Shown: positions 43,200-55,487 of the stretch, in pieces | Position numbering within the stretch: position 1 is the stretch's first letter | Layout: every line of letters starts with the position of its first letter | NCBI GenBank assembly: GCA_028534125.1 | Contig: CM052850.1 | Location: forward strand, 26,536,001-26,600,000 | Origin: Lama glama | Lineage: Eukaryota | DNA: 64,000 bases | Direction: 5' to 3' | Position numbers and translations under genes: made by a program | The notes under the pieces: model-generated | Seen by the model: the letters and a program-made list of their open reading frames with translations, nothing else | Databases searched by the model: none | Told to the model about the DNA's origin: nothing

Positions 43200-44720
43200 A
43201 CACCCCACCCTCTACAGTCCCCGCGCAGTGGCTGCCGCCAGAGCCACGTGTGCCCGTGCCCCGCAGGCACACAGGGAGGGAAGCGTGGCCACGCCTGGCC
43301 CGGCCATCATTTCCCCGGGCGGCCAAGGCGCGGATTCGTGGACAGCGGCCCCTTGGTGGGCCCAGACTGGTCCCCGAGCGCTAGCGCCGGGAGCATGAGC
43401 ACGAGGTCGGAGCGCGCAGTGGCAGCAGCGGCCCACGGGGTGGTACCAGCGCCCTGCGCCTCGAAGGTGGAGCTGCGGCTCAGCTGCCGGCACCTGCTGG
43501 ACCGCGACCCGCGACCCGCTCACAGTCCGACCCCAGCGTGGTGCTGCTGCTGCAGTCGCAGAGCCAATGGGTGCAGGTAGGGGCGAGGGCGGGGGTGCAG
43601 AGGGAAGAGGCCTAGGGGTGGACGGTGGTGCCGAGTGGGGACGCAGAGACCCAGGTGGGTGTGGGAAGCTAATGGGGCCCAAGGCAGCGGCGTCGGAGCT
43701 GGGGCTGAGCGCAGGGTCACGGGTGGGGTTACCGGGTCTAGGGGTGCGTGCCCAGGAGCTGTGGCAGTGGAGGTGTCCGGAGTGGGCTGGAGGCGGACCT
43801 GCACAGGGAGCTCCAAGCAGAGAGAGGAGCGCTGGAGTGGGGGGTGCGACCCAGGGTTGGGGGGGGCCTCCGGGGCCAGAGAGGCGCCGCAGGAGGCCTG
43901 CCTAAGGGGCAGAAAGGAGTGGAGGGGCAGGGGTTGGACTGGGGCCGCCGGTCCCTCTCCGCCCGCGGGGCAACCAGGAGCGCGGCTTTTCTGCCGGGTC
44001 CTCCTTCGCAAGGCGGGGGTGCCCGGACCTGGAGCAGGGAGGGCCGGGAGGGGAGCGGCCGACCCGGGCCGGAGCTCGCTGGGAGCCGAGGACTTGATCT
44101 CCGAGACTGGGACGCCCCGTCTGCAGGGCCCCCCAGCCTGTCGCTTCTCCTGTTCTTGAAGACTGGCGGGGTCCCCAGGGACCTCGGCGCGTGGCCAGGG
44201 CAGCCTGGCGTGTGGCCAGGGTTGGGGACCCGGCTCTGGGCGGGCGGGCCTCTGCGCCGCGGGGCCCCCCTTCAAACCTCTCGTCCTGGGAGTGCCCGGG
44301 GCGCCTGCGCAGGAGCGGGGCTTCCACGGGGCCCGCTGCCCTCGTCATCCCCGCCCGGCCCAGCCCTCCCCGCGGGCGGGTCGCGGCGACGGCTCCGGGC
44401 GCTCCGGGCGCTCCGGGCGCTCCGCGCCGGACGAAGCGCTTTCTCGGTCAAAATCTCACGCGAGACGCGTGGCTTCACCTCGAAAGAGCAGGAGATCGGG
44501 GCGCGAGCCGAGGTCAGGGGCTGAAGGGGCTGGTGAGCAGGGGAGCGGGGGCCCGAGCCCGCGGCGGCTCCAGGCTGTCCCCGCCGGCGGGCCCCTCCCA
44601 CGCTCTGGCGCCCCCTGGCGGGGTGGCGGCACGCGGGGTGGGGCGGGGGCGGGGGACGCGTCTGGGCCCAAGAGCCCAGGGGCTCGGAGGCCAGGAGCGC
44701 CGCGACCTTCTGATCCGTGA
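43200..44720. promoter_or_regulatory. CpG island over CPNE7 exon 1 / intron 1
   Basis: Dense CpG, GC boxes, (GCTCCGGGC)n repeat at ~44390-44425. Confidence 0.8.
43395..43576 (+). pseudogene. CPNE7: CPNE7 exon 1 remnant (frameshifted)
   Basis: MSTRSERAVAAAAHGVVPAPCASKVELRLSCRHLLDRDP, then 7-nt duplication plus 2-nt deletion; 182 nt. Confidence 0.9.
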
Positions 44721-45033
44721 CTCTGTACGGTCTCTTGTCATCTCCGGACCACCAGAGACAGATGCCTGCTTCTGGTTTCACTGTCCAGGGTTCCAATCCG
44801 CTCTGTCCCTGACTTGGGGTGCCCTTGGGCCCCACCCTTCCCCCTTCTGAGCCTGTTTCCCCATCTGCGATGTGGGCGGCCGGGGGAGTGAGGAGTGAGG
44901 GAGGGGCGGCCTGGAGCCTCGCAGCATCTTGTGGGGTGGGGTCTTCCCACAACACAGTCTGGAAGCAAGGACCACCTGAGGGCAGATGGGAGGGGAAGGG
45001 GACCCTGAGGGCCTCACTCGGCGCTGCCGGCAG

Positions 45034-45216
45034 GTGGACAGAACCGAGGTGGTCCGGAGCAGCCTGGACCTGGTGTTCTCCAAGGCCTTCACGCTCGGCT
45101 ACTGCTTTGAGGAGGTGCAGAAGCTGCGCTCTGAGGTCTATGACGCCCACGGGCCCAGCAGCCTGAGCTGTCGGGGTGACAACTTCCTGGGGGGCGTGGA
45201 GTGCACCTTGGGGCAG
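45034..45216 (+). pseudogene. CPNE7: CPNE7 exon 2 remnant
   Basis: VDRTEVVRSSLDLVFSKAFTLGYCFEEVQKLRSEVYD...FLGGVECTLGQ|gtgagt; 183 nt. Confidence 0.9.
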
Positions 45217-45842
45217 GTGAGTGCCCATCCCCTTGGGAAGGCAGGGGCAGGATGGGCACTTGGGCAGGTCCTGAGGGCTCGCTCTATGGCAGTGGTGGCA
45301 TGGGGACAATGAATAGATGCCGACTGTGTACCAGCATGACCCCCAGCGCTGCCTGTCTCCACAGCTCCTTCTCTTAAAAAACTCTTTTTGGTTATTTTTA
45401 AAAATATGTAATTTTGTGCTGGGTAATATGGATCCAAAGCCAGAAAGTGTGACAGGCACACATGGAAGGCTTCCCTCCTGCTCTGTCTCCAGGGACATTA
45501 CATTCTTCTGCAGAGACGTCTTCTCACTAGAGCCAAGGAACGCGTGCTCTTTTCTCTATATTCATGTATTAGAAAACCCAAATGGCATACACTGTTCTGC
45601 AGCTTGCTTTCTTCACTTCCATGACACAAGGGAGCCCTTCCCGTGTCTCTCCCGTGGCCTGTTGGTCCAGCTCCCACCTGAGAGACACTGTGTCCTCCAC
45701 TCCAGTCGTCCGTCAGCTCCTCCATTATCAGTGTAACAGGAGTGCCTGCTCTCGCCACCAGCCAGGCTACTTAGCGCTAGCCTCTGTGCTGAACACTCCG
45801 TGCGTCCCACGTTAAATTCTTGTGAGGGCTACAAGGGCACTG

Positions 45843-54529: not shown

Positions 54530-54756
54530 CAGTACCACGTTCTGCTGATCCTGACGGATGGCGTGGTGACCAACATGGTGGACACGTGGGAGGCCACGGT
54601 GCGTGCCTCCCACCTGCCCATGTCCATCCTCGTCGTGGGGGTGGGCAACGCCGACTTCACTGACACGCAGCTCCTGGACGGAGACGGCGGTGTCCTGCGC
54701 TCCTCCCGGGGCGAGCCCGCCCTGCAGGACATCGTGCAGTTCGTGCCCTTCCGGAG
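54530..54756 (+). pseudogene. CPNE7: CPNE7 exon 14 remnant (3' end and donor lost)
   Basis: [43 protein letters not shown]...DIVQFVPFR, then similarity stops. Confidence 0.87.
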
Positions 54757-55350
54757 GTTCCCACTGGGGCCAGGGCGGAGGGCCAGGCCTCAGGCAGTGC
54801 TGGGGAGAAATGGGCGCCTCCCTGCCTGCCCTCAGCAGCCTCAGCCCCTGCAAAACTTCGCGTCATGAGACCCTCAGGCTGACACCACAGAGGGCAGTGC
54901 ACCCCCACATGCAGGCTCCCCAGTGGCTTCCAAACATCTGTGACACAGTGAGATATGCAGGGTGTGGGGCCCACTTACAGCGTCCACGCGGGGCCTGGGC
55001 CCCGGGACCTGCCTTCCCTCCCTGCCTCCACCCGCTGCCCAGAGCAGGGTCACACCCACCCAGAGGGGCCCTGAGGGGCCTCCCGCAGTGCCAGCTGCGT
55101 CTGGCTGCCATAGCCACTGTGGTCCCATGTTGCCCGGCAGTGCCGAGAACAGGCCCATCTGGCCACCAGCTGAGTTCTTGTTTGTGGTCACGAGCTAGGG
55201 CAGGACCACTAGAGGCTGGAGACCGTAGTGTGAACCTGGCTCTAGGAGGGAGCAAGAGGTGTGAGCCATGGGGGTGGGGGAGACGGAAGACAGAGGATGG
55301 GGAGGCCCTGGCTGGAGACACACAGTGCACTCCCAACCCCGGCCCTGCAG

Positions 55351-55487
55351 GCACCCCCCTCAGCGCTGGCTAACCGTGTGCTAGCCGAGGTGCCCAGACA
55401 GGTGGTGGAGGATTACAGCCACGGGGATCTGCACCCAGGGACCGCAGCGCCTACGCTTGGGAGGCCAGCCTGGGCTCCACGCCCTGA
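55351..55487 (+). pseudogene. CPNE7: CPNE7 exon 15 remnant (1-nt deletion)
   Basis: APPSALANRVLAEVPRQVVEDYSH; ancestral-like EASLGSTP then TGA (55485-55487) lies in another frame. Confidence 0.82.

Follow-up and report, generated by a model that had tools for sequence, protein, structure and literature searches.

A probable unitary pseudogene of the copine-7 gene CPNE7 in camelids

The window analyzed here is a 64,000-nucleotide stretch of the Lama glama genome (GenBank assembly GCA_028534125.1, contig CM052850.1) that carries a copy of CPNE7, the gene for copine-7, a calcium-sensing membrane protein. This gene carries five or more independent lesions that disrupt its frame or its splicing. 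We conclude that the window copy is very probably the orthologous CPNE7 locus decayed into a unitary pseudogene, and that the loss probably dates back tens of millions of years, to a time that, on the comparison with dromedary protein models, would precede the Camelini/Lamini split. In all comparisons described below, the side labelled "alpaca" in our analysis is the window copy.

Frame, splice-site and coding changes in CPNE7

To map the exons, cow copine-7 (P0177; Bos taurus F1MZS0, 549 residues) was used as the guide in a tblastn comparison with the window, and the exon borders were then read from the DNA. The comparison yielded 15 coding blocks, in order and on the + strand, at positions 43395-55653, over 12.3 kb. 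This bears out a preliminary description of the window, which had reported all 15 copine exons in order. The window contains no N. Three-frame translation of 43.3-55.7 kb likewise gave an ordered series of copine-like segments on the + strand, the strand to which all exons below belong. Exons were translated, aligned and searched singly, and not as a joined spliced model.

The most upstream damage lies in exon 1 (43395-43576), which retains its ATG at 43395 and a donor GT at 43577-8 but has a broken frame. Here the 7 nucleotides 43503-43509 are duplicated in tandem as 43510-43516 and 2 nucleotides are deleted near 43523/4, for a net change of +5, and the stretches matching cow residues 1-38 and 42-58 lie in different frames. 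The frame passed on from the shifted exon 1 is closed within exon 2 by a stop at 45164-45166, and translation from the normal ATG would end there. Exon 6 (49171-49258; donor GT at 49259-60) has lost its acceptor, with AG changed to AC at 49169-70 and no AG in the 25 nucleotides upstream, and is also shifted in frame: 2 nucleotides are missing from the C-run at 49190-49192, so the first and second halves of the exon do not share a frame. Exon 8 (49786-49870), which encodes the basic stretch after C2B, contains a 2-nucleotide deletion after 49828 that places KYKQRR and NYKNSG in different frames, and carries the replacement W263R as well. Exon 11 (51429-51483) has an intact acceptor, an altered last codon (E to G) and, at 51484-5, the donor dinucleotide GC instead of GT. 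An indel was also considered as the lesion in exon 11 and was rejected, as two substitutions (GAG>GGG and GT>GC) suffice and the length is unchanged.

Two further lesions lie near the 3' end of the gene. The acceptor of exon 14 (54530-54766) is intact and 75 of its codons are open, while its 3' end is degenerate: the four codons that should follow FR at 54754 and end the exon, ELKS in cow, are unrecognizable, and the expected donor at 54767-8 reads GG. Exon 15 (55351-55653) also has an intact acceptor. It contains a probable 1-nucleotide deletion near 55432-6, approximately eight codons before the normal stop; with that stop removed, the reading frame stays open until 55651-3. Both lesions were ranked as weak because the C-terminal tail varies among mammals. 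No in-frame stops were found inside the exons when each was read in its own frame. The earlier proposal that CPNE7 is inactivated is thus upheld, since the lesions break both frame and splice sites. As to its list of lesions, the frameshifts in exons 1, 6 and 8, the lost acceptor of exon 6 and the lost donor of exon 11 stand, whereas the donor loss at exon 14 and the shift in exon 15 are retained only as weak entries.

The protein sequence encoded by the exons was compared with that of cow, exon by exon, within an alignment of 12 vertebrates from which the ten residues of 51032-51073 were left out. Identity between the window copy and cow, measured over 517 codons, is 83%; cow itself shares 94-95% identity with donkey and with seal. 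Tajima relative-rate tests, performed with five outgroups (donkey, seal, bat, mouse and tenrec), assigned 70-78 unique replacements to the window copy and 3-6 to cow (p = 5e-14 to 3e-16); the replacement rate in the window copy is approximately 15 times that of cow. At the 323 positions that are invariant in 12 vertebrates, 47 residues are altered in the window copy, compared with 0-12 in single functional orthologues examined in the same manner. The altered residues include D108N, S175P, D176H, W263R, T315I, D449N and R454W, and neither the conserved calcium-loop aspartates nor the DFTAS motif of the vWA domain are kept (D108N, S175P, D176H and T315I). The excess of replacements is alike in C2A, C2B and vWA, and invariant sites are altered about as often as all sites. 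In the aligned sequences, this spread has the appearance of neutral drift, a pattern that indel-type assembly errors cannot yield.

Shared loss in the dromedary and competing explanations

Two protein models from Camelus dromedarius, KAB1260585.1 and KAB1260586.1 (both "Copine-7, partial"; P0002, P0151), come from the same decayed gene. They are deposited as protein-coding and not as a pseudogene. The models are predictions that sidestep the damage: the normal exon 15 as well as exons 1, 5-7 and 11 are avoided, and intron pieces are read in their place. Residues 184-247 of P0151 align with window positions 49681-49872, which extend from intron 7 across exon 8, at 94% identity; the alignment has no gaps and keeps to a single frame. 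The text of KAB1260585/6, KYKQRRQLQELWGG, runs straight through the exon 8 frameshift and shows the same out-of-frame text after KYKQRR. Because the match to P0151 is gapless and stays in one frame across the deletion site, the dromedary DNA must have the same 2-nucleotide deletion in exon 8.

Derived replacements were counted over 280 sites at which cow, donkey and seal agree. The window copy and the dromedary models share 28 of these replacements, and a further 11 are found only in the window copy and 12 only in dromedary. When the two camelid sequences are compared directly, approximately 11 of 164 codons differ in the read-through intron pieces and 24 of 280 in the exons; the rate of change in the exons since the lineages split would therefore be no lower than that in the introns. 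The shared frameshift, the 28 shared replacements and the similar divergence of exons and introns argue that constraint was lost before the split of Camelus and Lama. Judged from how many changes are shared and how many are private, drift would have begun far back on the camelid stem, at a crude 50-80 million years if the Camelini/Lamini split is assumed to have occurred 16-25 million years ago; we take these figures to mean no more than tens of millions of years, before that split. The preliminary description had spoken of a pseudogene in this probably camelid genome and of a lineage-specific loss. The lineage-specific character stands, with CPNE7 intact in cow, sheep, muntjac and other mammals, but the loss appears older and wider than proposed and would predate the split between Old and New World camelids. 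We infer a history in which the copine-7 protein ceased to be under selection along the camelid stem, before the Camelini/Lamini split and probably several tens of millions of years in the past, and in which the locus has drifted neutrally ever since. Transcripts that remain, for instance those behind the 107-residue RefSeq model or the RNA contigs with 7-17% of the sampled words, would most likely be a non-functional read-out of a promoter region that is still GC-rich.

Three other explanations of the locus were weighed. The least probable of them is that the lesions are assembly or consensus indel errors in GC-rich DNA and that the gene is intact in the animal. The G+C content of 62-66% and the position of the exon 6 and exon 15 indels in C-runs are what such errors would favor, but two splice-site lesions are base substitutions, and indels cannot produce the approximately 75 lineage-specific replacements or the 47 altered vertebrate-invariant residues. 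Moreover, an independent dromedary assembly has both the exon 8 frameshift and 28 of the replacements, and the nearby RPL13 and SPG7 exons are clean. The sequencing runs point the same way: across 16 DNA runs, with five organism labels and from seven studies, 94-100% of the sampled 31-mers of 49130-55129 were present, with 100% in one run and 94-99% in the others. This 31-mer content shows near-identity across animals and cannot prove individual lesions. The earlier argument against an assembly error is strengthened by the frameshift found in the independent dromedary assembly and by a replacement rate about 15 times that of cow in every domain. Its control, the clean state of SPG7 and RPL13, holds for the exons that were spot-checked: one RPL13 exon matches at 57 of 58 positions, the others are open by eye, and the SPG7 exons with the Walker A, Walker B and HExxH motifs are intact.

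It is highly improbable that the window copy is a decayed duplicate and that an intact CPNE7 lies elsewhere, in which case the loss would not be unitary. The window copy is the syntenic, intron-bearing one beside RPL13, and a search of a collection of 5.8 billion proteins, with seal copine-7 and the dromedary model as queries, found no intact camelid copine-7 of 278-1015 residues, and none at all in this size range besides the two degenerate dromedary models. The dromedary query covered the part before the stretch homologous to 51032-51073. The same collection contains copine-7 from cow, yak, sheep, muntjac and more than 100 other species; human and primate copine-7 proteins were among the matches, and the comparisons made here draw on other species. 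The apparent unitary status of the gene rests on this protein-database search and not on a whole-genome search.

Another reading, also very unlikely, is that the locus still yields a useful product: a regulatory RNA, or a protein that is truncated or spliced in another way, for example one with C2A or vWA alone. RefSeq does predict a 107-residue protein, made of exon 2 and a cryptic exon; 7-17% of the sampled words of 49130-55129 occur in three RNA-seq runs labelled "reproductive system metagenome"; and exons 9-14 are mutually in frame provided that exon 11 can be spliced from its GC donor. However, the replacement rate is as high in C2A as in C2B and vWA, and invariant residues are hit too, as in D108N, D176H, W263R, T315I and D449N. 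Both camelid lineages still gain replacements, at a rate at least that of the intron pieces, and the tail of the 107-residue protein is absent from the dromedary models.

Several points weigh against the reading of CPNE7 as an ancient camelid pseudogene. The lesions in exons 14 and 15 are uncertain, and GC donors, such as that of exon 11, are sometimes functional. Dromedary proteins apart, each lesion rests on one assembly, and the protein models indicate only the exon 8 lesion as common to both camelid lineages. Parts of the locus may also be transcribed, as judged from the RNA-seq words and the short RefSeq prediction. With these points taken into account, we still consider decay of the orthologous locus very probable.

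The CPNE7 locus, its neighbors and predicted products

Most AG/GT borders of CPNE7 are preserved, and the gene is intron-bearing and not a processed retrocopy. SPG7 and RPL13, identified by their exons within the window, lie upstream of it on the same strand. The earlier assignment to the copine-7 locus next to RPL13 is thus supported: the introns are kept, and the gene lies downstream of both neighbors. The SPG7 exons encode intact Walker A and Walker B motifs at about 18.5-18.9 kb and an HExxH motif at 26.5 kb. RPL13 lies at 34.8-36.8 kb, and one of its exons is identical at 57 of 58 positions to mammalian eL13. An RPL13 intron contains the C/D-box snoRNA MBII-202 (SNORD68) at 35260-35343 on the + strand (80.7 bits), as expected for this host gene; the Rfam scan covered positions up to 50900. 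On the downstream side, no neighboring gene was recognizable by eye in the 55.7-64 kb part of the window.

Exon 2 (45034-45216), which encodes C2A, is open in its own frame, has intact splice sites and gives a Pfam C2 match. Its translation, used as the query in a protein search, returned copine-7 proteins, with P0001 (see below) as the best match. A short, GC-rich tandem repeat lies in intron 1 at about 44390-44430 (+ strand); it reads LRALRALRA in one frame and has two extra 9-nucleotide units relative to the dromedary model. Exons 3 (47755-47829) and 4 (48036-48110) are open and have intact AG and GT borders. Exon 5 (48752-48835), at the start of C2B, has intact splice sites and an open frame in which the calcium-loop motif KSDP is changed to KPHP by S175P and D176H. 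Exon 7 (49419-49517) is open with intact splice sites and gives a weak Pfam C2 match, and exon 9 (50212-50271) is likewise open with intact splice sites.

The vWA/copine domain starts in exon 10 (50929-51064), which is open, has intact splice sites and carries T315I in the DFTAS motif; the Pfam query for this exon ended at 51030. Exon 12 (51879-51930) is open and its splice sites are intact. The intron that follows it (51931-51993, + strand) is only 63 nucleotides long, in frame and free of stops; the dromedary models read through this intron and are 15 nucleotides shorter there. Exon 13 (51994-52127) is open, has intact splice sites and, like exon 14, gives a match to the Pfam Copine family (1.9e-28 for exon 14). 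Together the exons present the C2-C2-vWA order of the copine family (PF00168 and PF07002), as checked against cow copine-7. The domain matches, which derive from single exons, point to descent from a copine and not to a working copine.

The 107-residue RefSeq protein XP_031528340.1 (P0001), annotated as "copine-7-like [Vicugna pacos]", matches the window with 100% identity at 44986-45216 and 47485-47574. It starts at an intronic ATG, runs through exon 2 and ends in a cryptic exon (47485-47574, + strand; residues 78-107 of P0001, 100% identity) that is spliced from exon 2 and lies upstream of exon 3. We consider this protein to be probably an annotation artefact of the pseudogene. Its perfect match over both exons points to alpaca or a very close relative and agrees with the camelid origin that had been proposed from the sequence of the window.

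Comparison with other mammals and relevance to dentin biology

The functional copine-7 genes of cow (F1MZS0/P0177), donkey (P0182) and seal (P0171) have the same 15 blocks in the same order, the same C2-C2-vWA layout and the same place after RPL13. The window copy differs from these genes in its frame and splice lesions.

Degenerate copine-7 models were also observed in two cetaceans, the vaquita (Phocoena sinus; A0A8C9BTN7 and A0A8C9BJX2 from Ensembl; P0061, P0324) and the humpback whale (Megaptera novaeangliae; P0325, described in RefSeq as "LOW QUALITY PROTEIN: copine-7"). The cetacean models have 74-154 lineage-unique replacements, compared with 1-4 in cow, although read-through pieces raise the counts for the vaquita models. 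They contain broken stretches and share derived changes, such as the loss of one residue in the SIIIVGVG stretch. No further cetacean copine-7 models were found in the protein search, in which the vaquita query P0061 covered the region before the stretch homologous to 51032-51073. While the cetacean remnants resemble the camelid copy in being degenerate, their lesions differ from it, and they are known from protein models and not from DNA. Ruminants are closer to whales than camelids are. Because ruminants keep an intact CPNE7, the cetacean loss would be independent of the camelid loss, and the models suggest that CPNE7 was lost a second time in Cetacea.

In the Cpne7-null mouse (PMC10928576), odontoblasts are reported to become senescent and dentin to be aberrant, and Cpne7 has been called "indispensable" for odontoblast homeostasis (PMC10928576, PMC13733291). 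As would be the case in camelids, the protein is absent from these mice, but their knockout was engineered. CPNE7 and peptides derived from it are under development for dentin regeneration. One such peptide, CDP4, is located in the basic stretch after C2B (PMC13733291), and the 2-nucleotide deletion shared by the camelids lies at the end of the stretch from which CDP4 is taken (VN.KYKQ.., window positions 49810-49830, + strand). A 2026 review describes copines as evolutionarily conserved and is silent on losses (PMC13733291). In the searchable literature we found no report of a CPNE7 loss, be it in camels, cetaceans or elsewhere, or of a CPNE7 pseudogene, although the tables of genome-wide loss catalogues may list one; CPNE7 is not mentioned in the supplements of the gene-loss screen of Sharma 2018.

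In annotations, the dromedary "Copine-7, partial" entries and the "copine-7-like" stub of alpaca are best handled as artefacts of a pseudogene. A link between the camelid loss and tooth biology is speculation. Camelids have functional, heavily worn teeth. We regard as unlikely the idea that the losses in stem camelids and stem cetaceans share a meaning, namely that the role of CPNE7 in odontoblasts became dispensable or was replaced in lineages with unusual dentitions. If this were true, camelids and whales would be natural knockouts for testing the claims of CPNE7-based dentin regeneration. Apart from its bearing on dentin, the camelid case is another instance of lineage-specific gene loss, which is common. 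Animals that would have been without CPNE7 for tens of millions of years, yet have working teeth, would limit the generality of the "indispensable" claim, and camelids would offer a natural knockout for comparison, to which the likely second loss in cetaceans would add a replicate.

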